39,896 bases of DNA from Macrostomum lignano (Eukaryota): assembly GCA_002269645.1 (NCBI GenBank), contig NIVC01000824.1:1-39896 (forward strand). The letters run 5' to 3'. The position numbers and the translations under genes were made by a program. Below are positions 7,740-36,250 of this stretch, piece after piece. Numbering within the stretch: position 1 is the stretch's first letter; every line of letters begins with the position of its first letter. Under the pieces are notes generated by a model. That model was not told where the DNA came from and did no database searches. It worked only from the letters and a program-made list of their open reading frames with translations.

Positions 7740-10700
7740 TCATCGGCGCCAGTAAAACACAGCCGCAGTCGTTGCTAAGGAAGCTGCCGAGAGCAACAGG
7801 CCGCCTATCGATTGCCGAGCCGCCTGATTTACTTCCTCCGCCAGTGGCCTATGGAAGGACGCCACATTGCCATTCGATTCGTCTATCGGCTGATCGCCGG
7901 ACCCGTCGTCCACCCAATCCTCGATCTTCTCGGCCGGCCCCGGCCTGTGCCGCCGCTTGCACTCGCCGGCCGTTGTCGGCACCATGTCGCTGTTGACGCA
8001 CTTCATTCCGGAGTACTGGGCAAAGTAGTTGGGCAGCATTACGCAGTGGCCCATGCGGCAGCGGCTGCCCGTGGGCCTGTCGCACGGCCAGTTGGATTGC
8101 ACCGAGACGTCTTGCGGGCAGATCGGCGATTTGCCATCGCAGAACTCAGGAAAGTTGCATCTTGAATTAAGGAAAGTGACTGCGGGATAAGATTCTACTC
8201 ATTCATGAATTTATTATCTCCCTGCAAGCTCCAATGCACAGCAATCAAGTATTATCTACAAATTTCATATGGGTTTGTAGTCTAATCAAATATTATCCAC
8301 GATCTGCAAGGACCCTATCCAGCAGGCTCAGACTATCAACGCAAACCTGGGATCTTCGGCCAGTCTGCACAGAGTGCCCGCGGCCAGCGGGCTGCACGAA
8401 GTCGTGTTGCAGCAGTCGCCAGTTGCGCACGCTGCGCCTTTGACCAGCTTGCAGACGTCGGCCTGGCAGCAGCGATCCTTTCTGCAGGCGAGCGGCCCGC
8501 CGCAGTCGCACTCTTCGCCAGGCTCGACAATCCCATTGCCGCAGGTCGGTCCCCAGTCCTTCGAGTACTCAACGGTGAAGATGTAGCCATCTGGAGGTCA
8601 TTGAGTTGGATCAAGTGGGACTAGCGAGGACTAAATATCGCCTCTGTACACTGACTCTCGCCCTACGACCCATCGTTGGATTCCCAGTGCGGCCACATTT
8701 CCCTCGTATTTCAGGACTTGTGTACACGAATTGGCCGGAAGTTTGTCACGCGATTCACAGCCATGAGGGCCAACCCTCAAGGCATAGCGAGTGTACATGT
8801 CTGACTATTAGAAAGTCACGTTCACTGTACACCCTGCGAGAATGTGTGTGTAAGTGCGTGCCTGCGTACAATATTGGCACGCTTGTACATGTATGTGCTC
8901 AGGAGTGTACAATATTGGCACGCTTGTACATGTATGTGCTTAGGAGTGTACAATATTGGCACGCTTGTACATGTATGTGCTCAGGAGTGTACAATATTGG
9001 CACGCTTGTACATGTATGTGCTCAGGAGTGTACAATATTGGCACGCTTGTACATGTATGTGCTCAGGAGTCAGCGGAATGAGTAGATTATCCTTGCATAA
9101 GCCGTTGGCATAAGTCACTCACTGGTGCTCGAGAAAGGCTCAGCTGTCGCAGACAAGCAGGCTGCGTCTAGTGCCAGGCTGTCCAGCGCGTCCGCGACTT
9201 TGTTGATGCCGCAGTTGGTCCAGCCAACGTACTTGCTGCCATCGTTGCTGCGTCCTACAGAGTCGTCCATCAGGCACTGGGAAAATTTGCACTGGCATTT
9301 ATCCACGGAGTCGTGATTCCCGCCCAACCTGTGAACCAGCTCGTGTGCCAGGGCGAAGCCCGACAATTTTATATAATTCGGCCGTTTCGTGTCCAGCTGC
9401 GGGGCAGCGATAATTGATTGAGAAGTTTCAATAGAAAAGTGACGTTCTGAGATTGCGAAACTTTCCAGAATAATGAATGTGAATTCATATTCAAATGTTA
9501 ATTAGTTGAAGGACTCCCTCAAAAAGGCCTAACTAAAAGCGCAAATATGACTTGAAATTTCCACCCGAAAATGTCGAATGATACTTTCGCAACAAGATGA
9601 GTCAACTACTTTAGGCTACTAATAGCTGGACACAGCAGCTCAGCTGGTAGCGCGTCCGACTCTCACGTCTCCAAGAGAGTTCGAAGTTCGAAAAAAAAGA
9701 CAAATGGAGGTCTCAGACAATAGACTGGCACTCATAGCATTCGCCACAGAGGCGAATAAAAGAGAAAAACCACAGGAGCCAGTAAATCAACTCGCAAAGG
9801 TGAGCTCCAGAGCAAATGGAATCTCGCCATCAGAAGCGACCGCCCAACACACTGGCAGAAGAGAGAAGAAAACAATGAGCAGCGCCCTGGACACTGGCGA
9901 AAGCCAACCAAGCGAGACGGCGCGGCTGACAGGCAAGACTGGAGGGCTTAGAGGGGGCGAGATGTGACAGAAAAATGGCGAGCTCTGGATGAGAAGAGAG
10001 CTGTCCCAACACAAGAACGGCAGCCTACGCCCGCAGGCTTGACGACCGACGGTTCGATGGACAATTTAAAGTGTACAAGAGACAGTGAGAGAGAGACAGA
10101 CGGAAATGCATTCAGCTTTAATAGATTCTTTACTCTCATCAAATGTATCCAGCTCAACCAATGCGATTGCGCACCTCACAAATTACTCTAGCCTCTGCGA
10201 CTTAGCAACATGATAATAAACAGACTCGCTGCACAAGTATAGGGCGCTCTGTCCCGATTAAGACGAGTTGCTCGCTTGGCAATACAGTAGATACAAATAG
10301 TAAACTGAGTACGTATCAATATTAAAGTTTCGACACGTTTCGCACTCCAAGGTGCATCTAGAGGTCAGGTTATTGACGAGAGAGCAGAAAAGATTTGTGT
10401 ACTGAATAGCACTACTAGTTGCGGCTTTTATTAGAAGCAGGGAGGCTGTATACACAGCGGCGCACTTCACCGACATTGTCACACGAGAGGCATTACTGCC
10501 CATTCCACCGACCCCCTGAGCAGGCACACACTCACAGGAGTGTACAGCGGCCCTGACTTTATTTATCGTTAGGCATGTACACTTCACTGCGCCTTGGATG
10601 TTGGCCCTCAAGGGCGTTAATTGCACGAGCAGACACACGTCGAGATTCCAATTCAGCCTCAAATTAATGTGACTGCATTTGGAATCGAGCTTGGGACGCT

Positions 10701-13700
10701 GGCACATCAGAACGCCGCGGCCCACTAAGTACTGCGGATTATAACGGAATTTAAATGGTTGAAGGTGGAAAAAGACTGATAAAAATTTGACTTGGGTTAC
10801 CAGAGGCTAATAAAGTGCAGTTTTAATACAATCTACGTGTCAATAGGGCACAAGAATGTGAAGTGAGGCTTCAATGATCTGAGTTTGAAATCAGATTGAC
10901 GTCTTGTCAATGATTGTCTGACACTCGTCGGATTTGACTTCAATTTCAATTTTCCATGGCTTAAAGCTTCTACATGTATTCCTTGCCGATGAAGATGCAC
11001 GTGAACAGACATCCCGACGGCGACAGCGGAGAAAAATTGTCAATGGTTTTACGAGAATCGGAACCTCGAGCCGGAACGGCATCTCTTTTCGGTGTGCTCA
11101 GGCTTTGCATTGTTTATAATAATTAATAATATTAATAATAATAATAATTGATCACACCTGCCCTAATAGACAGATGTGCAACCGACAGCTCAGCCGCAGC
11201 TATTGCGCGGCGCATCTGAAGGCTGCGTACGGCTGTTCAGTCCAAGGACTGGGGGGTCGCCACACACAGCCTTAATTACCCCAGCTAATGCTGGCACTCA
11301 TTTTACAGCTGAGTGAACTGAAGCAATGCAGAGTTAAGTGTCTTAAGTGTCAAGGATACAAATTGTTCCAGTGGAATCGGGAATCGAACCCCCGACCTTC
11401 AAGTCGTGAGTTCTACGCTCTGACCATTAGGCTACAACCGCACTGTCTATAGAGCTGATTAAATCTCTATGCTATACCAGCACTCATTTTTCTTCAAATA
11501 TTCAAGTGATAATAAGTTAACTGAATCGCTTAAGAACAAAGGCTCTTCTCACGGCAGGCTAGATCAGTGTTTAGAGAATCGAGAGAGTTGAAACACCGGT
11601 GCACAGGACATGTACATACTCGTATATTGCATGAGAAGCATCGCCAGCTACTGAGACATCACCTTACAGAAAGCGACAATCGGGTATTGGATGACAGGTG
11701 CCGGCATTTAAATGGCACAAGATAGCTAAGATGGTAGAAAACAGCCCCCTGGTAGCTACACTGTTTAACAGCCACACAGCTCACAGTGACGTATCCAAGA
11801 CAGGTCGGCCGACCGAGCTGATGCTTGCAGACGTTGCCTTCTGAATCTGAAGCCGTGGAGTTGTCGATACTTCGTGCGCTGCAATGCAAGGGATGTGATG
11901 ATGCGTTGCTGAGAGGCAGTTAGGAAAAACAGCTGATGCCGAAGCCTAAACAGCTGGTATTAAATAATGCTTACGTGAATACAAAGATGCAGTTAACGAT
12001 TTGCTCAACAATAACCCCATAGTTGTTGTACGTGTAAGTATCTCGAATGAACTTGAGCTCGTTCCGGCTAGGAATGTCATAATCTCTAGCCAATAGATTC
12101 CAAGGCAAGTGCAGACTGGTCACCATCAAGTAGGTATTTAGTGGTCTGAGAAGCTACAAAATTATTAATATTTGCTATAGTCATTCAAGGACAAGGCAAA
12201 CCTCGCAGAGCAGTGATCAAAGCTTACCGTGTTTGCGTAGTTGACCACTTGTTTAGCTATGTTGCTCATTTCAGCTTGGTTCCGATTCGTGCGTTTCTCC
12301 TGTTTGAGAATGTTTTCGGTGATGCGGCTGCTATGAGAAAAAGAGCTGCTACTGTAGAGTTTCATTCATTCATAAAACGCTACTGTAAGTAGAGTAACGC
12401 AAAAACGCGCAGAAAAACTTAAACTATGAATCACGTTACTATTTATGTTTCGCAAAATTTTCCTATAAATACAAGCCAAAATTAAAGCGGAAATCTCAGA
12501 CTCGGAACAGCCTCAGAAGAGACTCATCCAGAACAACCACTGGAAAGGGGCTACATCTCTGAGAGAAACGTATACCGATTGGCAAGACTTTGTTGAAGTC
12601 GTTATTTGATTATTGAGTGTTGAGTCATTTTCGGCCGTGACTGATCAGTTGATTTCTGTTGAGTTATTGAATTAAAGGCCTCCATATTCATATTCCTAAG
12701 GGATTGGATAGGATCCACTGGACCGATTCCGATACTCTTGACGATTATCGATTTTTATTGACTTTGGCACCCTGGAGTACCAGATCGAGGCACACGACTC
12801 CCATTCCGTTATTTCTAGAAGAAGACGCCCTTTCTGGAGGACCTCGCGCTATTATTAGGGCGCATCTCTGATTCTGATTACTGATCTCGAGGAATACATT
12901 CCAAGAAACTCCGGAGGAAGACTACATTGAGGAGACGAGCTCTGCCGACCTGCCCGACAAAGAGGAAGAGCCCGCGACAGTACTTGATCACTAAATTCTG
13001 TTCCCAGACTTGCGGTCTGAAAGTATAGGAGTTCTTGAGCGACTGATCACCACCCCTAAACTCTTCACTACGAGCGTAGGAAGCGAGAAACTTACAAACT
13101 CCCTGTCCAAGTAGAGATGCAGCTTGACAATGTAGGGCCCGAATTTGGTCAGGAATCTGAACTGCTGGCTGAGGCTGATGTTCGCCCGAGTGAACTGCAG
13201 CCGGCCAGCTTGGTTGATTTTTCTAGAGCGCGGCGTTGCGTATCTGCGAGTCCTGCTGAGCTGCTCCATCGGCGGCGCAGTGAGGATTGCAGTTCGTGAG
13301 TGGTTTTGTGTGAGGAAGCGCATGACTGAATTCGTGACTGGGTGAGACAGATGTGCAACCGATAGCTCAGCCGCAGCTATTGCGCGGCGCATCGGAAGGC
13401 TGCGTACGGCTGTTCAGTCCGAGGACTGACAGGGGGGGGTCGCCACACACACCCTTAACTACCCCAGCTAATGCTGGCACTCATTTTACAGCTGAGTGAA
13501 CTGAAGCAATGCAGAGTTAAGTGTCTTAAGTGTTAAGGATACAAATTGTTCCAGTGGAATCGGGAATCGAACCCCCGACCTTCAAGTCGTGAGTCCAACG
13601 CTCTGACCACTAGGCCACAACTCCTGCTCGAAAGCTCATGAAAGTGTTTTTTAATAAATTGAATAAATTCAGAATACACGAGTACTCAAGGACGACTCAA

Positions 13701-14317
13701 GTAGGAGGACGGGAAACCTCGTTTCTTTGAAAATTTTTGAAGGCAGGTTTTCCAAAAAATACACTACAGAGATAGGAAATTTTCATTTTTTCAGCACAAA
13801 AATTGTTATTGCTTTTGATAGGAGGCAGATCCAGTGTTATCTTTTGATATGCTGTGCCTTTCTTATTGCTTTATTGATATTCATAGAGCTTTTCGTTCAG
13901 AAAATTAGGATTCTATCTTAACTTTTTATTCTACGTACATTTGCACGTGTCTTCTGCCTAAAAACCATTAAAATGGCACGGCTCGGCTCTTTAGTTTTAT
14001 GAGTCTATTTTATCACCCTTAGCTGAATGTGTCACAAATATGTGTAACAACGATGATAATCGACGAAAAGCTTTCCCGTCCTCCTACTTGAGTTGTCCTT
14101 GCGAGTATTCTGAATGAGAGTTAGTGAGTAAGCTGTATTACTGTTACCAGGTACATTGTCTTACCTGTTCAGATGCGGATGCTGCCTCTGTACCAGCCGG
14201 GTCAGGACTTGCGTCATCATTGTGCTCGACAGACTCACCGAGGCAAACAGACGCCTCTGGAAGCAGCGCAGCGAAGATGCTCGCGCTGACAAGTAACCAA
14301 GTGGCTAGCAAGTGCAT
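7740..14317 (-). CDS. ADAM/reprolysin-type zinc metalloprotease-disintegrin, paralog 1 (516 aa); exons 14317-14239, 14187-14165, 13260-13096, 12299-12228, 12153-11975, 11878-11785, 9396-9123, 8590-8347, 8160-7740
   Basis: Signal [19 protein letters not shown], furin-like [16 protein letters not shown], Met-turn CLMD, disintegrin [15 protein letters not shown]...CNFPEFC. All GT-AG with matching phases; 1551 nt in frame. Confidence 0.9.
8615..9085 (+). mobile_element. SINE family B, diverged copy carrying an internal 41-bp tandem array
   Basis: Shares GAGGGCCAAC..CAAGGC..AGTGTACATG..AAAGTCA..CTGTACAC..GTGCCTGC..CTCAGG..GCGGAATG with the copies at 10426 and 19041. Confidence 0.7.
8867..9070. 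repeat. 41-bp tandem repeat, 5 copies (TACAATATTGGCACGCTTGTACATGTATGTGCTCAGGAGTG)
   Basis: Units start at 8867, 8908, 8949, 8990 and 9031. Confidence 0.97.
10426..10738 (-). mobile_element. tRNA-derived SINE family B
   Basis: Reverse complement closely matches 19041-19407: B-box GCTCGATTCC, central domain, A-rich CTAATAAAA tail. Confidence 0.85.
11171..11439 (-). mobile_element. tRNA-derived CORE-like SINE family A, copy 1
   Basis: Minus-strand head with A-box TAGCCTAATGG and B-box GGTTCGATTCC; CORE-like ACTTAAC..CTGTAAAATG; near-identical to three other copies. Confidence 0.9.
13348..13621 (-). mobile_element. SINE family A, copy 2
   Basis: Near-identical to copy 1, including a ~47-bp 3' extension and the diagnostic GTGTCTTAAGTGT variant. 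Confidence 0.9.
13687..14101. mobile_element. MITE with 30-bp TIRs and 8-bp TSD (P-element- or hAT-like non-autonomous element)
   Basis: TIR CAAGGACGACTCAAGTAGGAGGACGGGAAA at 13687-13716 versus its inverse at 14072-14101 (29/30). Flanks are CGAGTACT and CGAGTATT. Confidence 0.85.
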
Positions 14318-14943
14318 TTCTCTATAGCAGCTGCAATCTCATCCAAAGCAAAATCTTGCTCCCAGCGTAAACTCTTTCCCAGCGCACTGCTGAATACATA
14401 GACCAAATTTGTTGAATCGAAAATAATTTGTTTGTCTAAAAATAGCTCGAGTTCTTTCCTCAGTGTAGCTATCGCTCAGTTTATTTGCTTCGTATGATTT
14501 CGAATCGATAGGAAAAGTTAAAAGGCTACAGAAAACAAAAGTACAAGTGAACCTAGGCCTTAAACTAACGGGAATAGCTATTATTACAGTTTATTAAGCT
14601 CATGAAGCGTTGGTCCAGCTTTCTCCATGGAAGCCTCTGTGTTCGCTTTGCTTTCCAGGAAGAGACACCTGGTCTGCAATTCGCCAGATTTGTAGTCTAC
14701 ATAAAACCAGACCTTTTCGACACCTCTTCGCGGTTTCTTTGTTTCATCTTAAAGTTGAGTGAACTTTTACCAGCTTACCAGCAATAGGGTTCAAGGAAGC
14801 AGTTACCCCTAGCGGAACTCGTTAAGAACGAGATATTTGTCTAATTTTGAATAGTACGTGTAGAGTGAGAAAATCACTGCAGAGCTCTTTGCAAATATCG
14901 TCACTGGGAAAGTCACAAGAGTTCCTTAAGCTAATCTCTGGCA

Positions 14944-17900
14944 CTATAGTATGCATTCAGATTCGAATGAATATCGGAATTCCAACAGGTAAGGCAAGAT
15001 GCCCAGAGCAACGGAAGCCGCGACAACCAACGGGCCGCTCCGCAGATGCTGAGCAGCCTGGTCAGTTTCTTTAACTATCGGCTTTTGACTGGCTTTAGCG
15101 GCGCTATCCGATACAGTCTCGTTGAGACTGTCCGTCCATTCCTCGATCTGCTCAGCAGGGCCGGGGTTGTGCCTTTTCTTGCACCCGCCATCGCTGGCCG
15201 GCACCATCCAGCCGCCGTGGCACTTCGGCCCGCTGTACTTGGCGACCCGTCTCGGCGGCAGGCAGTAACCAAGTCTGCACAGGCCGCCCGTCGCCTTGTC
15301 GCACAGCCAGTCGGGCAGCACAGAGACATCCGGCGGACAAACTGACGATTTACCATCGCAGAACTCCGGGAAGTCGCATCTGGAAGGAGGTGACAAGTGA
15401 ATCTGGCTGACGAATTTCTCGCGAATTATTCACGTTTGACCCTCATAAGCTCGTTTTAACCGATTAAATCAAGTACATTTCCAACAGAGCGGACCAAATA
15501 ATATTAATATTACTATTACTATTATTATTATTACTAAGCAAACCTGGGATCTTCGGCCAGTCTGCACAGAGTGCCCGCGGCCAGCGGGCTGCACGAAGTC
15601 GTGTTGCAGCAGTCGCCAGTTGCGCACGCTGCGCCTTTGACCAGCTTGCAGGCGTCGGCCTGGCAGCAGCGATCCTTTCTGCAGGCGAGCGGCCCGCCGC
15701 AGTCGCACTCTTCGCCAGGCTCGACAATCCCGTTGCCGCAGGTCGGTCCCCAGTCCTTCGAGTACTCAACGGTGATGCTTTGTCCGTCTGGAGATCACAC
15801 AAAATTTGAATGGTTGCAGTTTCAATGTTCAGAAAGCCCATAATCAAAACTTGGGCCGACAAGCCACTTTCCAACTCAGCAATGTAAACAATCTAGGACT
15901 GGCGCGAGGCTTCCCAAGGTTTAACAACTTACAAAATGCAGTTGGATCCACAGTTGAACGTGGAAGAAACCCTCTGGCCAAGACTACCCAGCCGTCTGAT
16001 GCGAGCTAGTAAGCAAACACAGAGCATCTGAAGGCTGCTTACGGCTGTTCAGTCCAAGGACTGGGGGGTCATCACTCACCACACACCCCAATTGCCTCAG
16101 CTAATGCTGGCACCCATTTTACAGCTGGGTGAACTGAAGCAATGCAGAGTTAAGTGTCTTGCTTAAGGACATAAATTGTTCCAGTGGGATCGGGAATCGA
16201 ACCCCCGACCTTCAAGTCGTGAGTCCAACGCTCTGACCACTAGGCTACAACCCCTGCTATCAGATTAATGATGTTAAGTCCTCGCTTCTTTCCAATGCGA
16301 ACGCCCCAGCAAGCAAAGTTGGGGACATGAGGACCCAGCCTTCATATACAATGGAAGGGATTTTGCGATAAACCAGTATAAAACCTTGTACAAGTACAGC
16401 CCAAGAAAGAAAGTTCGCTTATCCTCCTCGCCTTAGTTTTCTGTCCCACCCTTGGCCTGCTACTCGAATCTCGACTTTGGAGACTGAGTATAACAGAGAC
16501 TAAGTTGAACGAAAACTTGACTTAAACAATAATCTGACCTTCAACTTGTGGCCTCCTTGGCCTGGCACTAACGCTTGAGCATTGAATCGTAGAACAAAAG
16601 CCACAAAGACTAGAGCAAACAAAGCGTACAGTATTGCACTCTGGCTCACCCTCGCGAGCTCCAGAGCTCCAGTTGGCGGACAGGCAGGCCTTCCCTAGCG
16701 CCAGAGCATCGAGAGACTCGGCCAACTTGTCGATGCTGCAAGTGGACCAGCCAATCGGACTTTTCTCATCGTCCATGCCTACGTATTGGTCCATCAGGCA
16801 GCGGGAGAACTCGCACCGGCACTTGTCGTCGGCGTTGTCGTGGCCGCAGCCAACTCGGTGGCTGATCTCGTGGGCCAGAGCGACTCCAGCTGTTACGATG
16901 TAGTTTGGCTTGTTCGTCTCCAGCTGTGAATTATGAGCAAGAGTTATCATTCAATGCGTAAAAACAGGCAGAGGGTCAAGCACCAGAACGGAGCCCAAAG
17001 TAAAGCTTTGGATCAAGCAAAACTACAATTTATCATTTGTGGGACAAGTTGATAAAAATGCCGCAAATAAAAACAATGGAATTGGATTTGCAAGTCAACT
17101 TAAGCCTCTTACATCATGGAGAGGCTATAGTTACGCCAAGTTTCAATTTTCATCATAAAAATGGTTCATTCAACCGTTCCCTCACCATGACGAAGCCTTT
17201 GCATTTCGGCTTGCCGTAGTCTTTCTTGCAAGGGTGACCGGATGAGTCCGAAATTGAGTAGTTCATATGGTCCCGGCCTCTGCAAAATTGAAAGAAAAAA
17301 TCTAATTGAAAGTGCTTCAGCTCAGAAACTGTAAACAAATTGACACGAATTCAGCAATATTTTTATTAACTCACAGGAAAATAAAAACGCAATTAATGAC
17401 CTCTTCAAACATGTAAGAGTAATACTGGTAGTTGTAATCGTTCAGAAAATATAATATGTCATTGCTTCGTGGTTCCAGACTTGACCCGACATGCTTCGAC
17501 GGAATGTGCGTGCTCGCCACCATGATGTAGAAGTTGAATGGCCTCAACAACTGCAATCACAAGCAAGGTGTTTGATGTGAGCAACTTTAACATAAATGAA
17601 AAATATTTGTTACAGGCTTCAGAGCGAGTCTAAGTCTCCGGAGGTTTCAACTTCCGTCAGAGTCACTGTGCAAGTGTCAGGGTCGGTTAGAGTAGCTTGT
17701 GGAGTCAGGGTCGATCAGTGCAGCTTGTGGAGTCAGGGTCGGTCAGAGTAGCTTGTGGAGTCAGGGTCGGTCAGAGTAGCTTGTGGAGTCAGGGTCGGTC
17801 AGAGCAGCTTGTGGAGTCAGGGTCGGTCAGAGTAGCTTGTGGAGTCAGGGTCGGTCAGAGTAGCTTGTGGAGTCAGGGTCGGTCAGAGCAGCTTGTGGAG

Positions 17901-20511
17901 TCAGGGTCGGTCAGAGTAGCTTGTGGAGTCAGGGTCGGTCAGAGCAGCTTGTGGAGTCAGGGTCAGTCAGAGTAGCTTGTGGAGTCAGGGTCGGTCAGAG
18001 TAGCTTGTGAAGTCAGGGTCGGTCAGAGCAGCTTGTGGAGTCAGGGTCGGTCAGAGCAGTTTGTGGAGTCAGGGTCGGTCAGAGTATCTTGTGGAGTCAG
18101 GGTCGGTCAGAGTAGCTTGTGGAGTCAGGGTCGGTCAGAGTAGCTTGTGGAGTCAGGGTCGGTCAGAGTATCTTGTGGAGTCAGGGTCGGTCAGAGTAGC
18201 TTGTGGAGTCAGGGTCGGTCAGAGTAGCTTGTGGAGTCAGGGTCGGTCAGAGTAGCTTGTGAAGTCAGGGTCGGTCAGAGCAGCTTGTGGAGTCAGGGTC
18301 GGTCAGAGCAGCTTGTGGAGTCAGGGTCGGTCAGAGCAGCTTGTGGAGTCAGGGTCGGTCAGAGTAGCTTGTGGAGTCAGGGTCGGTCAGAGCAGCTTGT
18401 GGAGTCAGGGTCGGTCAGAGCAGCTTGTGGAGTCAGGGTCGGTCAGAGCAGCTTGTGGAGTCAGGGTCGGTCAGAGCAGCTTGTGGAGTCAGGGTCGGTC
18501 AGAGTAGCTTGTGAAGTCAGGGTCGGTCAGAGCAGCTTGTGGAGTCAGGGTCGGTCAGAGCAGCTTGTGGAGTCAGGGTCGGTCAGAGCAGCTTGTGGAG
18601 TCAGGGTCGGTCAGGATCATACCGAGTTGGCAAAGTTGACGACCTTCTTTGCCGTCGCGATCAGGTTTTTAGTGCTTTTCATCAGGCTCTCCTAAAACAG
18701 TGTTTAAAGTTGATCTGATCACGTTTTGGATTCTGCTAGCATAGCAACAAAGCAATCGTGAATCAAAGTGCATTGCATACCAGATCTTTTTCTAGGTAGA
18801 GATGCAGCCTAATTATATAAGGCCCGAATTTGGTCAAGAATCTGCTCTGCTGGTTTATGCTAACATTGACGCGAGTGAACTGGAATCTGTACTTTAGATC
18901 TACTTTGTGATTGCGCATTCGAGGATCGTATCTGCGCACCCGACTTAGCAGCTGAAATATTTTAGCGCGGTTTAAATGAGTGAACTTCAATTCACGAAGT
19001 ATGAGTTTCTGAGTGAGTTTATAAGTGAATTTATGAGTGAGGGGGGCCGTAGCCCAGCGGTAGCGCAGCTGCTCTGGTGTGCCAGCGACCCAGGCTCGAT
19101 TCCAAGTGAAGCCACATTAATTTGGGGCTGAATTGGAATCTCGGCTTGGCTCTGCTCGTGCAATTAACGGCCTTGAGAGCCAACCCCCCAAGGCGCAGTG
19201 AAGTGTACATGCCTAACGATAATATAAAGTTAGGGCCGCTGTACACTCCTGTGTGAGTGTGTGCCTGCGTACGTATCCGCGCGCTTGTATGCCTGCTCAG
19301 GGGAGTCGGCGGAATGGGCAGTAATGCCTCTCGCCAGTTGTGTGCCTATGTCGCTTAAAGTGCGCCAGGGTGCACACAACCCCCCTGCCTCTAATAAAAT
19401 AAAAAAATTTATGAGTGTCTGTAAGTGAGTTGATGAGTATGTTCAATAGCGAGTTCATGAGTGAGTTTATGTGCGAGTTCAATATTGAGTTTATGAGTGA
19501 GTTTATGAGCCAGTTTATGAGCCAGTTTATGAGTGAGTACAATATTGAGTTTATGAGTGAGTTTATGAGCCAGTTTATGCGCCAGTTTATGAGTGAGTTC
19601 AATATTGAGTTTATGAGTGAGTTTATGAGCCAGTTTATGAGCCAGTTTATGAGTGAGTGATTTTCAGTGCTACAAGCAAAGCCTCTCACCATCTCAGCCG
19701 GGGTCTCCGTTGCCGGTTCTGCAGGTTTGCAATGGAATGGTTTTGTTAAAATTTAATTTGCTGAAGTTAGGATGAACTTCACTGCAATGAAGCAGAAGCA
19801 TTATCATCTTTTGTGGGAAAAATTGTTCTAATTTTTCTGGAATTGGTTGCAGATCTTACTATTTGAGCATTGATTGTCAAGCGCACACACAACATTGCAC
19901 AAATACTAAAATAACTAGTTGGGCCACTCAGCTCATTTACGTGTAAGCTACTTTCAGTTCAGTAGTATGTTAAACAGACGCATTTTAATGTATTTTTAAA
20001 GCCTAGGCTCATTTATTTGCTCTCTTACCCCCAGCTTAAGCCCTCCAACCGCGCCTTTCCACAGTTCCCCCCGCCCCGCCCCAATTTTTATTGTCTTTCT
20101 CGGAATTCCAGCCTAAAGCTGCCATGTACATTTTAGTGGACTGGCTAATGTACATTACTGCTGAACCAATTAGCAAGTTGTTTACGCCTGCAAGCTTGGG
20201 TTTCTAAGCTTATCAAAGTCATTTCAGCTGCCTTGATTTTTATAAAATAGCTTATGTATTCTTTATTGCTACTGAACTGAAAGTAGAAAGCTGTTTTACT
20301 AAGTATATGTGCCTGAGTGGCCCATCTAGTTATTTTAGTATCTGTAAGCGCACCTAAGATGCATCGATCTACATTTAATATCAGACAAGTGTCAGGTTAA
20401 GACAGCAATTGATCCACCACCAGCCAAGTGCCTACCTTGATTTCCAACGATCAAATTAAGCACCACCAAAGCATTGACGAAAACCAAACAGATGTTTTTT
20501 AAATGCAGCAT
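14944..20511 (-). CDS. ADAM/reprolysin-disintegrin paralog 2 (522 aa); exons 20511-20436, 19718-19690, 18951-18781, 18691-18623, 17550-17375, 17279-17186, 16923-16650, 15787-15544, 15379-14944
   Basis: Signal [43 protein letters not shown], disintegrin domain. Same exon phases as paralog 1; 1569 nt in frame. Confidence 0.9.
16030..16252 (-). mobile_element. SINE family A, copy 3
   Basis: Same tRNA head, CORE-like domain and tail as the other copies. Confidence 0.9.
17680..18614. repeat. 28-bp minisatellite (GAGYAGCTTGTGGAGTCAGGGTCGGTCA), about 33 copies, in a paralog 2 intron
   Basis: Direct tandem units filling most of intron 17551-18622. Confidence 0.97.
18975..19660. repeat. 12-bp array (ATGAGTGAGTTT-like) interrupted by a SINE B
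   Basis: Degenerate units at 18975-19040 and regular units at 19408-19660. Confidence 0.85.
19041..19407 (+). mobile_element. tRNA-derived SINE family B, apparently full length
   Basis: A-box TAGCCCAGCGG, B-box GGCTCGATTCC, A-rich tail AATAAAATAAAAAAA. AATTTATGAGTG lies on both sides (19028-19039, 19406-19417). Confidence 0.88.
19900..20344. mobile_element. MITE family 2, copy 1 (~445 bp, imperfect long TIRs)
   Basis: Left TACTAAAATAACTAGTTGGGCCACTCAG..CTACTTTCAGTTCAGTAG is inverted at the right end. A second copy lies at 26163-26602. Confidence 0.85.
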
Positions 20512-23129: not shown

Positions 23130-26100
23130 TCAACTCGGCAGCAGAACTGCAAATAATGCAACAGAGGAAGCCACCGCCAGCCAGAGTTCACTACCGACAT
23201 GCCGAAACCCCCGATCCTGCGTCTCTAACACCGGTCGATGGTTCACCGTCGAATTAAGCTTTGAGTCTGTATCTAAAGTGGAATTATTCTCCTTGGAATC
23301 CTCGTTGTGCTCAAACGCAAACACAATGTCGTCCTTTGGCAGCGGGTCCACCCACTCCTCCAGCTGCTCGGCGGGGCCCGGCTCGTGCATCGGCTTGCAG
23401 TCGCCCGCCGTGGTTGGCACCGTCTTGCCGAGTTCGCACCGCGGCCCGCTGAACTTGGCGCCCCACCGTGGCGGCAGGCAAGCGCGAAGGCGGCACCGCT
23501 GGGTCTTCTTCTCGTCGCACGGCCAGTCGGACATCACCGAGAGGTCCGGAGGACACGTCGCCTTCACGCCGTCGCAGAACTCAGGGTAGTCGCATCTGAA
23601 CACGCGATGTGCAGAAAGCTTTGGAGTAACACTAATGAGGTCTCGGTGGTACATTTTTAATGCATGAAAATCCATTCAAAAAAATAAATATTCGCCAAAA
23701 GGGTTGTAATTGGCACCTTGGCGCAGAGCCGTCGGCAACATGGTCCCACAAGCAGCGCTGACAAGCGCGCCAATACTGTACACAGACATGCACTCATACT
23801 AATGGTGCAGAGAAGTGACCAGGTGTAGAAACTTTAACTGAGTGTGATGTGAGCACACAGAAAGATAAATACTACTGAATAAAGAGCATGAGTAGTTTGA
23901 AACCACTTGAAGCGATGTCTCTGCTATCTCACCAAGATTCTACACTGTAAACCTGCTGCGAAACGGACCTGTGATCAACAGCCAGCCTGCAGAGGACGCC
24001 GCTAGCCAGTGGCGTGCACGAAGTAATGTTGCAGCAGTCGCCGAATCCGCAGGCTGCACCTGAGACCAGTTTGCAGGTGTCTGCCTGGCAGCAGCGGTTG
24101 TTCTGGCAGGCGAGCGGTCCGCCGCAGTCGCACTCTTCGTTGGGCTCGACAATGCCGTTGCCGCAGGTCGGTCCCCAGTCCTTCGAGTACTGCAGCATGA
24201 TGCTGCGCCCGTCTGTGAAACATGCATAGCGGGTGCCTTATTAACAAGGGGGGAGCCCGATTTAGAGCTTCAGACTACAGTCTTCAATGGATTCATCTTG
24301 TCGGAACAGTCAATCAAAACTCCTTGGAGTTGAGTTTGCCTGCAGGCAACTTTGGGTCAGCGATCCGCAGTCAGCGAGGATGCAATCAGTCATGTTCATT
24401 CCACTGACACCTGAGCAGGCACACAGGGTGTACAGCGGCTCTGACTTTCTCATTCTCAGGTAGAATTTGCCTGCTCTGTGCCTGTGGATTGACCATCTTG
24501 TGCGAGAACTGCGCAACAAAAAGCCCCGGGTTAATTTTCTTGCTCACCGTTATGAGGCTTCCAGTTCCACTTGGCGGATAGGCAGGCCTTGCCCAGCGCC
24601 AGAGCGTCGAGAGAATCGGCCACACTGTTGATGCTGCAAGTCGACCAGCCAATTGGCTCAGCTTTGCCCTCCGTGACCACGTATTTGTTCATCAGGCATC
24701 GTGGGAAATGGCACTGGCAGTACTTTGAGTCGTGACTGGCGCCTATCCTGTGGCTGAGCTCGTGGGCCAGAGCCAGTCCCGCCGTCTTGATGTAGTTCGA
24801 CTTGCTAAGTTCCAACTGCGGAACGGGGTGTCATGCAGGAAAGTTTTATTCTGATAAGCTGCTCTTGTGAGTGATGCAGCCTGGGTTGGAGCCTACACCG
24901 CTAATGATAAAGCAAAGAAGCCTTTATTGTTGCTAAAGAATCGTCAATAGTCGCTAAGGAATCAACAATGGTCGCTAAGGAAATCACCAATGGTCGCTAC
25001 GGAATCCTCTAGGGTCGCTAAGGAATCCTCTAGGGTCGCTAAGGAATCCTCTAGGGTCGCTAAGGAATCCTCTAGGGTCGCTAAGGAATCCTCTAGGGTC
25101 GCTAAAGAATTACCAATGGTCGCTAAAGAATCACCAATGGTCACTAAGGAATAACCAATTGTTGTTAAGGTACTATAAATGGTCGCTAAGGAATTACCAA
25201 TGGTCGCTAAGGATTTAACAATGGTCGCTAAGGAATTATAAATGGTCGCTAAGGGATCGTCTATGATAGCTTCGCTCCCCAGGATGCGATAATGATCTTG
25301 ACTGGTTTTATCAGCTTTTCAAGCTTTTTCTCTCACCGTAACGAATCCAATGCATTCTGGTCGGCCATAAAGGTCCTTACAGAGCTCGCCAGTGGAGTCC
25401 GACATCGTATAGTTCATGTTGTCGCGGCCTCTGCGAGTGTTGCCGAATATGCCCAAAAGCAGAGTAAGCTTTATAGTTTTCTAGTGAGTTCACTCATGAA
25501 CTCATTCATAAACTCGCTCATGAACTCACTCATGAACTCCCTCATGATCTCGCTCATGAAGTCACTCATGAACTCCGTCATGATCTCGCTCATGAAGTCA
25601 CTCATGAACTCACTCATGAACTCACTCATGAACTCCCTCATGAACTCCCTCATGATCTCGCTCATGAAGTCACTCATGAACTCACTCATGAACTCACTCA
25701 TGAAATTGCCCATAAAGTAACTCATGAACTCCCTCATGAATTCACCCATAATAATCGTACCAAGTGTCATAATAAGGTACTGATAAACTTATTTCACATT
25801 AGTTCTGTCCAAATTTCTGGCATCCAGCGGGGCAAACTTACAAGAACGTGAATATACAATCGATGTTGTCCTCAAACATGTACTGCCAATAGTTTAAGGC
25901 ATATTCGGAACGCAAGAATTCAAGAATATCTTTGTCGGGAACGCTCGGGCTGTAACCCGTAAACTTGGACGGAGAATGCAGACTGGTCACCGTAATGTAG
26001 GCGTTGAATGGTTTCAGGAGCTGCAAAATTACAATGCAATCTGAGCTTGTGATAGTGGGATGACAATAACATTTGAAGGTCAACATTCAAGGACGGCCAG

Positions 26101-29100
26101 ATAAAATGCAGGAGTGGCGACTCCTGCATCTCCAGCCAAAATAGGTTATATAGTATTAAACACAGATGCTAGAATATACTTGGGCCACTTAGCACATTTT
26201 CTTGTAATCTACTTTCAGTAGTAAGTTAAACGGAAGCATTTTAATGTATTTTAAAGCTTAGGCTCATTTATCGGCTCTTAAATAAAAAGCTTAGGCGACT
26301 CGCGCCTTTTCGCACTATAATACGTACCCCACCCGCGCCCAATTTTTATTGCCTTTCTCGGAATTCCAGCCTAAAGCTGCCATGTACATTTCAGTGGACT
26401 GGCTAATGTACATTATTGCTGAACCAATTAGCAAGCTGTTTACGCCTGCAAGCTTGGGCTTCTAAACTTATCAAATTCATTTCAGCTGCCTTTATTTTTA
26501 TAAAATAGCTTACGTATTCTTCATTGCTACTGAACTGAAAGTAGAAAGCTGTTTTACTAAGTATATATGCCTGAGTGGCCCATCTCGTAATTTTAGTATC
26601 TGATGTACTAAACGAATCCTATGGATTTTGAAAGACCGTTCTTCGATCCAGCAAAATAATTCCAAGAAACAACGACCGCGAAAACATCTAAATATACTAA
26701 ATCTCTAAGGTTTGTATGCTTGTCCATGTCCAATATACTAAAAATCAAAACTATGTACCTATAGGAACCTTCGCTTAACTTGACTCTACATGGTCGGAAT
26801 TTCGTGGGGTTTTCTGCATTCGATGCGTATTGATGGTGCGCAGGTACACAAAATTTTGCTAAGAAATTGCTTCATTATTTCGGGCTTAAATATTCGAAAA
26901 ACTCAATTTTCTCCCTGTTTTTTAAAGTTCAAACAGTTCTTTCCGATTGAGAAGCAGTCTGCCGGCCGATGGAATTGTATTGCATCATAACTCAGTGCCA
27001 ACTATAGCATTGGTTCTCCACACTCGCGTGGAGAGCTACAAGCGTTGAAAGGTTGCGCAACACATTTTAATTGAGGGGCGGGTGTCGCTATTCAATTATT
27101 CATGGGCTGGCTTCATGTGGCTTGGTTGTTAATTTCAATGCATCAACTTGCAGGCCTCTTACTGAGCTGGCGCTGAATGTACGCCTTATGAATTTGAATG
27201 CTTTAAAGCAGGAATGTTCAATCATTGTTTGTGCTTCGAGTTTTTTACTTTCAGAAGAGAGCCTTGTATTGCTAGAAAGAGCTTGAAACGCTGAGTTCGG
27301 GAATAATTTCTTTGCTTACTCGTAGATTCGAAAAATTAAAAGCACAGCATTAAAAAGAAGATTCCTTTGAATTTTACTTTATATACTCATTGTACGCTCT
27401 CCAATATCGCAAACCCCTACTTTATCGCAATTCCACAATTCAAGCCAGCGCCATTGAATTTAGATTTAGATTGCGTAACCATATTGGTGACTTTATTTGA
27501 AACTGATACAGACTGGCTGAGAAATTATGTCATAACTGCTTTGCGTGATTTACTCTGTGCGTGGAGTTTTGAAAGTGTTGAATTATGTAAGTGCTACAAT
27601 TTATGTTATCAAAGCATTGAGAGATAGCCTAGAGGTAAACAGACTGACCTGCTAATGCAGCGACGTGGGTTCGAATTTTTAAATTGTAGAAGTATTTTAT
27701 TAAAAAAAATTAATTTTAAACTTTTTAGCTAAAGAAAACTAAAAAAACGTCAGGTAAATCAGGTAGAAGAGAAGCTACGAGTATTATATTCAAAAAAAAT
27801 TATTAAACTGAGATGCCAAGGCTAAGAGGGAATTGCTGAGATATCAAGACGTGAGGGGAATTGCTGAGATGTCAAGACTTACTGGGGGAATTACTGAGAT
27901 ATAAGGGCTTACTGAGAGAATTACTGAGATGCCAAGGCTTAAGAGTGAATTGCTGAGATGTCAAGGCTTGGAGGGAATTTCTGAGGTGTCAGGGCTTGGT
28001 GGGAATTGCTGAGATGTTAAGTCTTGGGGAGGAATTCTATGGATCGGGGAATCTTTGAACGAGAGATGCTTCTAATGGATATCTCGAGGAGATGAGGGGA
28101 TTCTTTGGCCAAGAATTCTATTCATGGGCGGATTATTTGGATGGGAGTTTCTTTGGATTCCTTGAATGGGGGATTCTGTTGATGGGGATTATTTGGACGT
28201 AAAGTTTTTTGAACGGGTTTTTTTAGATGAGGGTATTATTTGGCCAATTATTCTTTTGATGGGAGAATCAATGGATAATGTGGATGGAGATTCTGTGGAT
28301 GGGGATTATTTGGACGTGGATTATTTGCATGGGGATTTTTTGGAGGGAGATTCTTTAGTTAGGAATGGATGGGGATGGATAGGAGGATTCTTTGGATAGG
28401 GATAAATAGGGGCATTTTTTCGATAGGGATGGATGGGGGATTCTTTGGATATGGATGGGTGGGGGGTTCTTTGGATATGGATGGGAGGGGGATTCTTTGG
28501 ATATAGATGGGTGGGGGGATTCTTTGGATATGGATGGGTGGGGGATTCTTTGGATATGGATGGGTGGGGGATTCTTTGGATTTGGATGGGTGGGGGATTC
28601 TTTGGATATGGATGGGTGGGGGATTCTTTGGATATGGATGGGTGGGAGATTCTTTGGATATGGATGGGTGGGGGATTCTTTGGATATGGATGGGTGGGGG
28701 ATTCTTTCGATGGGGACTCTGTGAATGAGGGACTCTTTTAATAGGGATTCTTTTGAAGGGGATTCTTTGCATGTGAGATGTTATGGATGGGCAATGCATT
28801 GGATGGGAAATTCTTCAAATAGGAGAATTCCTTGAATGGGGAATTCTTTGGATCCGGGATTCTATTGATAGGGGTTCTTTGGATGGGAGACTTTTTGATA
28901 TGGATGGAGGTCGAGGATTTTTTGGATAGGGATGGATAGGGGGATTCTTCGGATCGGGGATTCTATCGATGGGGTTCTTTGGATGGGGATTCTCTGCATG
29001 TAAGATTCTATGGATGGGCAATTCTTCAGATAGGAGAATTCCTTGAATGGGGAATTCTTCGGATCGGTGATTCTATCGATGGGAGGTTTTTTGGATGGCG

Positions 29101-32100
29101 GATTCTTTGCATGTGAGATTCTTTGCATCGTGGATTTTATGGGTGGTGTATTCTTTGGATGAGGGATTCTTTGTATGGGAGATTCAGTTGGGTGAAATTT
29201 TATTGCGTGGGAAAACTGTGGCTGGAGTTTGGACGGAAAGCCTCAACGGGAGTTGGAATTGGCTAGCTGAGGAAATTGCTTCATTAATCTTGCTGGGGGT
29301 ACTTTCTACAGGGGTTGCTTGCTATCGGAAGGACGCTTGCTCTTGGGGTATGCTTGCTCGGAAGAGAATTTTAAGATGTCAAGATTTACAAGGGGAATTA
29401 TTGAGATACATGTATAAAATCTTACCTTGGGGAATTAATGACATGTGAAGGCTTAAGTGGGACTTGCTGAGATGCCAAGGCTTGTGGGGGAATTGCTGAG
29501 GTGTGAAGGCTTAAAAAGAATTGCTGAGGTCTTAAGTCTCGGGAGGGGAATCGCTAAGATGTCAAGACTTACTAGAGGAATTACTGAGATATGAAGGCTT
29601 ACTGGGAGAATTACTGAGATATCAAGGCTTGGGGAGGGGAATTACTGAGATGTCAAGGCTTTGGACGGGGAGAAATTGGTAACATGTCAAGGCTTGCGCC
29701 GGAATTGCTTAGATGTCAATGCTTGGGGAAAATTTCTGAGGTGTCGAGGCTTGGGGAAATTGCTGAGATGTTAAGTCTTGGGGGAATTCTATGGATTGAT
29801 GATTCTTTGGATGAGGGATGCTTCTAATGGATAAATTTGAATAGGTGATTCATTGGGCAATTTCTTCGGTGGGGCATTGTTTCGATTGAGGGTTTTTTGA
29901 ATGGGGGATTCTTTAGATGAATGATTCTTTAGATGGGGGTTATTTGAACGGGGGTTCTTTAGATGAGGGGATTCTGGATTCTTTGGCCAATTATGCTTTT
30001 GATGGGGGATTATTTAAGGATGTGAATTATTTAGAGGGGGGATTTTTTGGAGAAGGAATTTTTTGGATATGGATGGTTAAGGTGATTATTTAGATAGGAA
30101 TGGATGGGGAAATTCTTTGGATAGGGATGAATAGGAGGATTCTTGGGATAGGGATGGATGGGGGATTGTTTAGATAGGGATGGATGGGCGATTCTTTGGA
30201 TAGGGATGGGTGGGGGGATTCTTTGGATAGAGGGTTTCTGTGGATGAGGGATTTCTTGAATAATGGATTTATTGGACGGGGAATTCTTCAGATGGGAGGA
30301 TTCCTTGAATGGGGAATTCTTCGGATCGGGGATTCTATCAATGGGATGGGATGGGGATGGGACGGGAAGGATTGGTATTCTTTGCATGTGAGATTCTATG
30401 GATGGGCGATTCATTAAATAGGGAATTCTACAGATAGAGGATTCCTTGAATGGGGAATTCTTCGGATCGGGGATTCTGTCGATGGGAGGTTCTTTGTATG
30501 GGATTCTTTGGATGAGGGTTTTTTGCACGTGAGATTATTTGCATCAGGGACTTTATGGATTAGAGATTCTTTGGATGGGGGGGGGGTTCAGTTGGGTGAA
30601 TTTCTTTTGCGTGGGAAAACTTTGGTAGGAGTTCTGACGGAAAGCCCCAACGGGGGTTGGAATTGGCTAGTCCTATATACTAAAAATGAAAATCTTGCTT
30701 GTTTGTACGCAATCGATTAGAGAAAAAATGGCTTAACCGATTTTCATGAGACTTGCACTGTTCGATCAGAAATTTTCCCGTGACGGTACATGCATCTTGG
30801 CTAAGAAATTGCTCCATGTTAAAGCGATTAAATATTCGAAAAACATGCTTTTTTGCAAAGGTCAAGCAAACTTTTCGACTTGAAATGCATTGTAAGAATG
30901 CTAGAGAAAAAACTGACTGGTTGAATTCTGATTCTGAAATAAATTGCATCATAAATGAATTGTAACTCCGACTTGAATTGCGTCACAGTATTGAAAATGC
31001 AGTGTGGAAGCGTAGCACCAGACGTGATTTAGATTGCGTAACCATATTGTTATCTGATACTGACTGACTGAGAAACTGATTATGTCATAACTGCTTCGTG
31101 TGATTTACTCTATGCTTGGATTTTAAACTGTTGAATTATATATATATAAGGGCAAAATTTGATGTTATCAAAACGATGAGAGCTAGCCTAGAGGTTAGCA
31201 AACTGAACTGCTAAATGCAGCGACGATGGTTCGAATTTTCATAGAGTATAATTTTTTTAATTAAAGCTTTTCAATGTCAGGAAAACTAAAAGACTTTTTA
31301 AAAAGAAGCGTCATGTAAAAATCATAGAAGCGTCATGTAAAAATCGTGGAAGCGTCATTTAAAAAATCATAGAAGCGTCATTTAAAAAATCATGGAAGCG
31401 TCATATAAAAATCATAGATGCGTCATTTAAAAAATCATAGATGCGTCATTTAAAAAATCATAGAAGCGTCATGTAAACAATCATAGAAGCGTCATGTAAA
31501 CAATCATAGAAGCGTCATGTAAACAATCATAGAAGCGTCATGTAAAAAATCGTAGAAGCGTCATGTAAACAATCATAGAAGCGTCATGTAAAAAATCATA
31601 GAAGCGTCATGTAAAAAATTATAGAAGCGTCATGTAAAAAATCATAGAAGCGTCATGTAAACAATCATAGAAGCGTCATGTAAAAAATCATAGAAGCGTC
31701 ATGTAAACAATCATAGAAGCGTCATGTAAAAAATCATAGAAGCGTCATGTAAAAAATTATAGAAGCGTCATGTAAAAAATTATAGAAGCGTCATGTAAAC
31801 AATCATAGAAGCGTCATGTAAAAAATCATAGAAGCGTCATGTAAACAATCATAGAAGCGTCATGTAAAAAATCATAGAAGCGTCATATAAAAATCATAGA
31901 AGCGTCATTTAAAAATCATAGAAGCGTCATGTAAAAAGCATAGAAGCGTCATGTAAACAATCATAGAAGCGTCATGTAAACAATCATAGAAGCGTCATGT
32001 AACAATCATAGAAGCGTCATGTAAACAATCATAAAAGCGTCATTTAAAAAATCATAGAAGCGTCATATAAAAATCATAGATGCGTCATTTCAACAATCAT

Positions 32101-35100: not shown

Positions 35101-36250
35101 GAGGCAGTCTTTAAGAAATACATGACGGAGAATGAAGGTTTCATTTTTCAGCAAAAAAATTGTTATTGCTTTTCGCATAGGAGAGACCCAAAGTTCATCT
35201 TTTGATATGTCCTACCTTTCTGATAGTTCTGTTGATATTCACAGAGCATTTCGTTTAGAAAATTTGGCTTTTATGTCTTACAGATATTTTACAGATGGCA
35301 CAACTCGACTCATTGGTATTATGAATCTTTTTTATCATTCTGTTACACATCTTGTTACACAGTCACAAGGCAAGACAGAATATGTGGGTATCTTACCAAT
35401 CCTTTGTCCAAGTAGAGATGCAGCTGAATAATGTAGGGACCATTTTTTGTCAGGAATCTGAACTGCTGGCTGAGGCCAACGCTAACGTGAAGTAGTTGAA
35501 ACCTGTCCTTTAAAGGCTTTTTAAATTCGCGCATAGTTGCTCTGCGGACACGTCTGAGCGGCTGAAACTGAAATGCCGTGTTGCGTCACTGAGCATGCGA
35601 GGTTATGAGCGAGTTCACGAGTGACATATGATCAAAGCAAGGACGGGAAATCTCGTCTATTAGAAAACATTTGGGGGGCTGCTCTGCGCCAAAAATATAC
35701 TTTGTACACTACGGAGATAGCACATAAAAGCGATTAATTTTTTCATTGGTTTTTCATTGGTTTCTTCTGTAAAAACGTTCTTATGAAGGTGTATTTAAAA
35801 TTGTACATGCCTTCTTCTATTTAAAGTAAAAATTCATAAAAAATATGACTGGGAAGCTTTTTTTAACAAATAAAAGACTTGATTTGAATCCCGTCTCTCT
35901 CCTTTAATCGTCTTTGGATCAATGTTCTCTATGTTGAAGATCTACATTTATGCATCAAAATGCAGGTGCATAGATGCTAGTTAAATAGTCACACCTAATA
36001 AATTTTGCACTCACCATTTCTGACGATTTCAAAGGCTCTGGTAAATAGGTGTCTTCTAAAGAGTGAAAAAATTAGTGTTTAGATTGGTTTATATCAAAAC
36101 GTTTGACGTACGATATGTTGTGCCATAAAATCGAAATTACTAAATTATAATCGGCAAAAGTATACTGTCACCTTCTTGGCCTGATGCGATGGTAAGCAGA
36201 GTAATCAACGTTACGACTGAAGCGCAATAGAAGGCAAGCGTCCAACGCAT
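23130..36250 (-). CDS. ADAM/reprolysin-disintegrin paralog 3 (529 aa); exons 36250-36172, 36037-36015, 35561-35397, 34849-34778, 26020-25842, 25430-25337, 24815-24548, 24212-23969, 23595-23130
   Basis: Signal MRWTLAFYCASVVTLITLLTIASG, RVRR, AKEVVNFANT|LLKPFN, HELSHRIGASHD, CLMN, disintegrin domain. 1590 nt in frame. The exon 8 donor gtccgt is weak but gives the same 244-nt length as in the other paralogs. Confidence 0.85.
24330..24530 (-). mobile_element. SINE-like fragment sharing the family B central domain
   Basis: Minus strand: AAAGTCAGAGCCGCTGTACACCCTGTGTGCCTGCTCAGGTGTCAGTGGAATG. Its 3' part resembles 37590-37745. Confidence 0.6.
24935..25255. repeat. 21-bp minisatellite (GGTCGCTAAGGAATCCTCTAG and variants)
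   Basis: Tandem units in paralog 3 intron 24816-25336. Confidence 0.92.
25485..25745. repeat. 12-bp array (CATGAACTCACT-like), inverse orientation of the 19408 array
   Basis: Tandem units in paralog 3 intron 25431-25841. Confidence 0.92.
26163..26602. mobile_element. MITE family 2, copy 2
   Basis: Colinear with 19900-20344 along its whole length. Confidence 0.85.
26687..30670 (+). mobile_element. Non-autonomous Helitron-like element, unit 1
   Basis: 5' A|TCTAAATATACTAAA (a second TCCAATATACTAAAAATCAAAA at 26729). 3' hairpin AGCCCCAACGGGGGTT then CTAG at 30667-30670. Internal duplicated 3' end with CTAG at 29263-29266. Confidence 0.7.
28425..28710. repeat. 26-bp G-rich minisatellite (TGGATATGGATGGGTGGGGGATTCTT), about 11 copies, within a wider degenerate G-rich field (28030-30580)
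   Basis: Direct tandem units. Confidence 0.9.
31304..33640. repeat. ~23-bp AT-rich satellite (AGAAGCGTCATGTAAAAAATCAT), roughly 95-100 copies
   Basis: Tandem units with a variable A-run; degenerates after ~33520. Confidence 0.98.
34402..34446 (+). repeat. Interstitial telomeric repeat, (TTAGGG) about 7 units
   Basis: TTAGGG TTAGG (TTAGGG)5 TTAG; a degenerate copy lies at ~34031-34078. Confidence 0.9.
34930..35045 (-). mobile_element. SINE fragment with B-box and family B central domain
   Basis: Minus strand: GGTTCGATTCC..AAGTCAGGGGCCGCTGTACAC..GTGCTCAGGGG. Confidence 0.6.
35050..35340. mobile_element. Diverged copy of the 13687 MITE family
   Basis: CAAGTAGAAGGACGGGAAA left end; internal TTTTCAGCA..AAAATTGTTATTGCTTTT..ATCTTTTGATATG matches 13790-13850. 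Another partial copy lies at ~35636-35915. Confidence 0.65.

Follow-up and report, generated by a model that had tools for sequence, protein, structure and literature searches.

Organisation of the locus

The window analysed here is the entire 39,896-bp contig NIVC01000824.1 of the Macrostomum lignano assembly Mlig_3_7 (GCA_002269645.1). It carries three tandem genes on the minus strand, P1, P2 and P3, each with a reprolysin and a disintegrin domain (Table 1). The subject of this work is a single exon, the disintegrin exon, which is almost identical between P1 and P2 within otherwise strongly diverged genes, very probably as the outcome of real interlocus (non-allelic) gene conversion. Gene structures were established by spliced mapping of proteins. 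For P1, the protein of 533 amino acids (aa) was taken out of the fused model P0049 with one residue corrected to the window sequence, and the resulting spliced model reproduces both the annotated protein P0028 and the P1 portion of P0049. Every intron of the three models is bounded by GT-AG. The last six exons have equal phases in P1, P2 and P3 and, the last exon excepted, lengths within a few codons of each other. Three UniProt models from ML2, P0047 (1475 aa), P0049 (1462 aa) and P0030 (727 aa), fuse P3, P2 and P1 into run-on proteins from which portions of the disintegrin exon are missing, as in '...KGAACDFPEFC...' and '...GINKDRCCQ...'. These fusions are annotation artefacts that fall exactly at the repeated tract described below.

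Judged by their predicted domains, P1, P2 and P3 are short ADAM-like proteins rather than canonical full-architecture ADAMs. Their likeness to the ADAM family (MEROPS M12B) lies in Reprolysin (PF01421, 43–58 bits, cut-off 20.8) and Disintegrin (PF00200, 65–69 bits, cut-off 35.1, full length 1–75/75) matches above the curated Pfam thresholds. All three also have the HExxHxxGxxHD zinc site, which P1 encodes in exon 6, and a Cys-x-Met turn. The best solved relatives are ADAM22, ADAM10 and ADAM17 together with P-III type snake-venom metalloproteinase-disintegrins, and identity to vertebrate ADAM15, ADAM32 and ADAM9 is 31–40%. Unlike ADAMs, the flatworm proteins are only 522–537 aa long, with a short N-terminal region, no EGF domain and a very short hydrophobic C-tail. 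Neither Pep_M12B_propep (PF01562) nor ADAM_CR (PF08516) gave a Pfam hit at E<=1 in any of the three, and no cysteine-switch prodomain was detectable. Each protein begins with a signal-like N-terminus, shortly after which, at around residues 38–60, a conserved RxRR motif (RTRRY, RVRRY, RVRRA) resembles a proprotein-convertase site at the end of a very short propeptide. The hydrophobic C-terminal stretch, recognised by eye in all three, would be a transmembrane segment or a glycosylphosphatidylinositol (GPI) signal.

Table 1 Genes, exons and tract copies in the window (nt, nucleotides)
Feature	Position	Strand	Details
Near-identical tract, P1 copy (putative conversion tract)	8341..8578	-	232 exonic + 6 intronic nt (gtttgc)
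Near-identical tract, P2 copy (likely donor)	15538..15775	-	partner of 8341-8578
Variable site, exon position 56, AAT/AAC, silent	8535; P2 partner 15732	-	A/G on + strand
Variable site, exon position 136, GTC Val / GCC Ala	8455; P2 partner 15652	-	A/G on + strand
Gene P1 (Mlig013992)	7740..14317	-	8 exons; open model of 533 aa; existing annotation a 310-aa partial only
P1 exons	14317-14165, 13260-13096, 12299-12228, 12153-11975, 11878-11785, 9396-9123, 8590-8347, 8160-7740	-	spliced mapping
Gene P2 (Mlig026616, P0043, 522 aa)	14944..20511	-	9 exons; exact spliced mapping of P0043
P2 exons	20511-20436, 19718-19690, 18951-18781, 18691-18623, 17550-17375, 17279-17186, 16923-16650, 15787-15544, 15379-14944	-	spliced mapping
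Gene P3 (Mlig019806, P0041, 537 aa)	23130..36250	-	9 exons; exact mapping of P0041
P3 exons	36250-36172, 36055-36015, 35567-35397, 34849-34778, 26020-25842, 25430-25337, 24815-24548, 24212-23969, 23595-23130	-	spliced mapping
P1 exon 7, disintegrin exon	8347..8590	-	244 nt, phase 1 in / phase 2 out; Pfam PF00200
P2 exon 8, disintegrin exon	15544..15787	-	244 nt; Pfam PF00200, 5.5e-19
P3 exon 8, diverged homologous disintegrin exon, outgroup	23969..24212	-	pS (proportion of silent differences) 0.38-0.41 vs P1/P2
P1 catalytic exon D, unconverted flank	9123..9396; P2 partner 16650-16923	-	per-exon comparison
P1 last exon F, unconverted flank	7740..8160; P2 partner 14944-15379	-	per-exon comparison

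A near-identical tract confined to the disintegrin exon

Direct comparison of the two tract copies, each 238 nt long, gives 236/238 matches. This agrees with an earlier sequence-only reading of the locus, which had described them as identical except for one Val/Ala base and one silent base. The borders are sharp and lie where that reading had placed them, as judged from exon models and alignment. On the 5' side the tract starts 12 nt inside the exon, with 5 of the 12 preceding exon bases differing between P1 and P2. On the 3' side it runs 6 nt into the downstream intron, through the donor sequence gtttgc, and identity then collapses. The corresponding six bases of P3 are gtccgt, and its disintegrin exon, already described as clearly diverged, is 78–80% identical to those of P1 and P2 in nucleotides and 74–78% in amino acids. 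The probability of at least 236 matches in 238 positions is 9e-48 at a background identity of 61% and 2e-20 at 80%. Rfam and tRNA scans gave no match in or near the tract. A plus-strand open reading frame (ORF) runs antisense across the tract in P1 (8374-8586) and P2 (15571-15843), with a counterpart in P3 (24014-24229). It was judged a by-product of Cys-rich, GC-rich codons, since P3 has the ORF as well despite its 20% divergence.

Silent-site divergence was estimated by the Nei-Gojobori method exon by exon (exons A, a, B, C, D, E and F, where E is the disintegrin exon). Between P1 and P2, pS is 0.052 in exon E versus 0.57–0.77 in the six others, so that silent sites are saturated in every exon except this one. 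Amino-acid identity is likewise 94% in exon E versus 35–58% elsewhere, and nucleotide identity outside exon E is 51–65%. The exons on either side illustrate the contrast: exon D has 59.6% nucleotide identity, 51% amino-acid identity and a pS of 0.68, and exon F has 61%, 47% and 0.575, in line with the estimate by eye that neighbouring exons are about half identical in protein sequence. A per-exon comparison of silent sites had been proposed as the check on that reading, and high silent identity is found in the disintegrin exon only. Between P1 and P2, the two introns that flank this exon show no more similarity than shuffled controls, and a blastn comparison of them returned no hit, so the description of the flanking introns as unrelated also stands.

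Strong purifying selection on the disintegrin exon alone, without any exchange, would be an alternative account, and conservation is indeed highest in exon E in each of the three pairwise comparisons (dN, the non-synonymous divergence, is 0.15–0.18 against P3 and 0.26–0.63 in the other exons). However, selection acting on the protein leaves silent sites unprotected, and third positions of exon E agree at 78/82 sites between P1 and P2 versus 56–57/82 for either gene with P3 and 36–53% between P1 and P2 in the other exons. The tract also includes intronic sequence, and the tree of the disintegrin exon is incongruent with that of the remaining gene. Selection without exchange is therefore barely credible, the silent-site contrast in itself ruling it out.

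The change of tree along the gene is seen in several comparisons. In exons B, C and D similarity is greatest between P2 and P3, with amino-acid identities of 52, 61 and 61% versus 37, 42 and 51% for P1 and P2, and these two genes remain the closest pair over the first 14 nt of exon E, which are unconverted. Within the tract P3 stands 20% apart from P1 and P2, which are nearly identical to each other. A Sawyer-type permutation test was applied to the 786 polymorphic sites of a three-gene codon alignment, with 20,000 permutations and our own implementation in place of the GENECONV program. The longest concordant P1–P2 run spans 27 sites, compared with a permuted maximum of 13 (P <= 5e-5), and neither P1–P3 nor P2–P3 gave a significant result. 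An older conversion involving P3 was considered from the low pS of exon E and a 37-nt identical run between P2 and P3; it is not claimed because the permutation test was not significant for the two pairs that include P3. Taken with the presence of the tract in all three copies of the locus described below, the pS contrast, the two breakpoints, the permutation result and the change of tree support the earlier proposal of an ectopic conversion confined to the disintegrin exon.

P1 and P2 might instead both have received the exon from a third paralog located elsewhere, to which the highly redundant genome (PMC5730564) lends a general rather than a direct plausibility. The first protein search returned the P1 protein alone from M. 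lignano and a three-paralog profile then retrieved P2 and P3, but across these searches only the P1, P2 and P3 clusters were found in the species. P3 itself differs by 20%, and in P2 the transition from the unconverted, P2/P3-like 5' end of exon E into the tract is seamless. A common outside source is accordingly highly improbable.

Subgenome copies and shared variants

The P1 protein belongs to a cluster of three near-identical members, the other two encoded on NIVC01003785.1 (loci L001/L003) and NIVC01003495.1 (loci L002/L004). These two contig copies, referred to as g1 (the one with L002) and g2, are 98–99% identical to the window over the shared region. The sequenced DV1 line is described as having three subgenomes, S, L1 and L2, which are 1.4–2.4% apart (PMC10733133). 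Divergence among the copies of the locus is about 1–2% overall and 0–5% in the introns adjoining the disintegrin exon, which fits the published subgenome divergence, and we take the three contigs to be the three subgenome copies. Compared with the window, the last exon of P1 in the g1 copy (L002, 11020-11516) lacks 3 nt in frame and, within a G run, a further single nt. The second deletion causes a frameshift that changes the tail of the annotated protein P0029 (261 aa): either P1 is decaying in this subgenome or the assembly contains a homopolymer error at this point.

The tract is present in both P1 and P2 on all three copies of the locus (window, g1 and g2). Across these six tract copies there are three variable sites, one of them private to a single copy, and no fixed difference between the paralogs. 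At exon position 56, every P1 copy has T, as does the P2 copy of g2; the other two P2 copies (window and g1) and every P3 copy have C. At position 136, P1 has T in the window and g2 and C in g1, P2 has T in g1 and C in the window and g2, and every P3 copy has C. T is the derived state at both positions, with C ancestral at 136, and in g1 the Val/Ala site is swapped, P2 carrying the derived T and P1 the ancestral C. All four two-site combinations of positions 56 and 136 occur, with states read from the Pilon-polished assembly. Both P2 polymorphisms equal the P1 states, a coincidence with a chance of about 4e-6 if the mutations were independent. Variants held in common by two paralogs in this manner suggest, as far as assembled sequence can, repeated exchange rather than a single event, and the pattern would be a classical signature of continuing exchange between duplicates. 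In P3 the disintegrin exon with 40 nt of flank differs by 1.5–2.5% between copies (window 23969-24212, L003 22641-22964, L004 14222-14545) and has four amino-acid polymorphisms among the subgenome copies (Ser/Ala, Ile/Met, Pro/Arg and Leu/Met), none of which equals the P1/P2 state.

The assembly history raises the alternative that one paralog exon was overwritten in silico through collapse, mis-polishing or a chimeric consensus. Mlig_3_7 was assembled with Canu from PacBio reads and polished by Pilon with short genomic Illumina reads and RNA-seq reads (PMC5730564), about 36% of scaffold length is reported to be chimeric between subgenomes (PMC10733133), and a read pair is at least as long as the tract. 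Polishing cannot, however, produce a 99% match over 238 nt from sequences that differ by about 20–40%, because reads so diverged would not map. A border 12 nt inside the exon and the inclusion of six intron bases are not what RNA-seq-driven correction is expected to leave, and unique introns anchor the multi-kb PacBio reads around the exon. All three contigs carry the tract, separately and with unlike intron structure, as do the older protein models from ML2, in which P1 and P2 share the same disintegrin peptide and which derive from the same PacBio reads as Mlig_3_7 (PMC5730564). Such an artefact is very unlikely.

Mechanism, direction and timing

Our results support a model in which about 238 bp of the disintegrin exon was copied at the DNA level from a neighbouring gene 7.2 kb away, most likely from P2 into P1. 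The six intron bases within the tract indicate a DNA template rather than a cDNA template. Before the event, the available homology was probably one 244-nt exon about 80% alike, and strand invasion and heteroduplex formation would have been possible only there. The tract would be confined to the exon because this is the sole stretch with enough similarity, both flanking introns being unrelated. A mechanical homology limit of this kind is a simpler account of the exon restriction than selection, and selection for a common adhesion module is a possible cause of the homogenisation. Once formed, near-identical exons may have made further short exchanges easy, which fits the few tract variants being common to P1 and P2 in the three subgenome copies.

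Other forms of patch replacement, namely a double unequal crossover or microhomology-mediated template switching during replication, would leave an identical-looking product, a short patch with two sharp borders, and the arrangement of P1 and P2 as tandem genes in the same orientation, with tract copies 7,197 bp apart, would suit them too. Against them, the probability of a double crossover within 250 bp is in general far below that of an ordinary-length conversion tract, and copy number is unchanged in all three copies of the locus. Shared single-site variants 80 bp apart are also better explained by short heteroduplex tracts. We therefore regard these mechanisms as improbable and infer conversion between the P1 and P2 disintegrin exons, with probable recurrence.

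The direction of conversion is indicated by the outgroup. P2 and P3 have a sister relation in the exons and the exon E segment given above, and the distance of the tract to P3 (pS ~0.4) resembles P2–P3 rather than P1–P3 distances, which makes P2 the probable donor and P1 the recipient. As to timing, the paralogs differ within the tract by 1–3 of 238 nt, which is not above the differences between subgenome copies in the adjoining introns, and the last exchange therefore appears to be about as recent as the subgenome split or later. P1, P2 and P3 themselves are old duplicates, and protein searches found no homolog above ~51% identity in any other flatworm. The earlier suggestion that the adhesion module was homogenised while the catalytic domains diverged holds for the homogenisation and fails for the simultaneity: silent sites in the other exons had already reached saturation, and conversion overwrote one old module long after the genes had diverged.

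Several points weigh against this interpretation. The evidence is a polished assembly, in which single bases within a 238-bp identical stretch could have been mixed between copies. Reads internal to the tract map equally well to six places, and polishing could in principle have exchanged single-base states, which is unlikely. A single inbred line and a single read set underlie all three copies, which as replicates are not fully independent. The direction rests on few sites. All data are from within M. lignano, and statements on age and on recurrence across species are conjectural to that extent. Finally, exon E is the least diverged exon in comparison with P3 as well (pS as given in Table 1), and part of its conservation is due to ordinary constraint or to older exchange.

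More tentatively, the P1/P2 disintegrin exon may behave as one gene pool spread over two loci and three subgenomes, in which short and possibly reciprocal exchanges are ongoing; we consider this conceivable, if somewhat doubtful at present. If true, the exon would be a natural reporter of how often ectopic conversion occurs, and over what tract lengths, in an animal whose polyploidy is very young, and the shared exon might reflect selection for a common binding partner beside diverged protease specificities.

Relation to known systems

Interlocus conversion between tandem duplicates is well established, including tracts the size of an exon and domain-restricted concerted evolution, with the human gamma-globin genes, RHD/RHCE and the red and green opsin genes as textbook cases. 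The P1/P2 tract resembles these in having a near-identical patch, silent sites included, between diverged flanks, in its shift of tree within the gene, and in the common orientation of the two genes and their separation of a few kb; the apparently shared polymorphisms would be a further likeness. It differs in that P1 and P2 are saturated at silent sites and have unrelated introns, whereas the textbook duplicated units are still wholly alignable. The tract is thus a tidy example of how little homology conversion needs, one 244-nt exon being enough. A second parallel is provided by paired immune receptors, in which the ligand-binding exons are homogenised and the rest diverges. In P1 and P2, too, one binding module is identical and the other domains differ; unlike in the receptors, this identity is known from sequence alone, and selection as its cause is only possible.

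Sequence exchange in the neopolyploid genome of M. lignano has been described (PMC10733133), and the P1/P2 case would extend it to exchange between paralogs, not only homeologs; the term 'gene conversion' does not occur in that paper. A literature search found no paper with these gene identifiers, searches combining Macrostomum with 'gene conversion' found nothing on this locus or these genes, and those combining gene conversion with disintegrin domains found snake venom genes only. The tract is a new instance of a well-known process and involves no new mechanism. It is also a warning for annotation and phylogenetics in M. lignano, most of whose genes are present as two or three near-identical copies, that single exons may have their own history; the older models of this locus are fused or mis-spliced across the identical tract.

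Repeats and neighbouring genes

Repeats lie in introns of all three genes, and introns of P2 and P3 differ in length between copies of the locus. The P3 intron between exons 4 and 5 (26021-34777) measures 8.76 kb in the window, 8.80 kb in g2 and 0.78 kb in g1. The extra DNA consists largely of minisatellites, among them a 23-nt unit repeated 100 times at 31304-33617 and 26–28-nt units at 27808-28711. The matching P2 intron is 1,072, 512 and 1,968 bp long in the three copies, with a 28-nt unit repeated 33 times at 17676-18614 in the window. In P1, the intron between the catalytic and disintegrin exons contains a 41-nt unit repeated five times (98% matches) at 8866-9070, and the alignment of the window to L001 breaks at this array. 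Arrays of a 12-nt minisatellite in introns of P2 (19424-19658) and P3 (25490-25749) lie in opposite orientation and are about 76% complementary.

A dispersed repeat of about 250–300 bp occurs in four copies that are 88–94% alike (11168-11470, 13345-13640, 16021-16272 and 21193-21450), one of them in P2, within the intron that immediately precedes the disintegrin exon. Two copies give weak Rfam tRNA matches on the minus strand (16185-16254 and 13555-13624), so that the repeat is probably a tRNA-derived short interspersed nuclear element. Inverted copies of another element, 88–100% complementary, are located at 10484-10711 and 19073-19333, and a 276-bp repeat at 20068-20345 recurs at 26326-26603 with 86–91% identity in translated comparison. 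Outside the three genes, a single ORF of 576 aa for an alkaline phosphatase lies on the plus strand at 4909-6639, convergent with P1, PF00245 being found on the matching L001 gene. Nearer the start of the window a further gene matches TORC_N weakly, and a 16-nt minisatellite occupies 385-1032.

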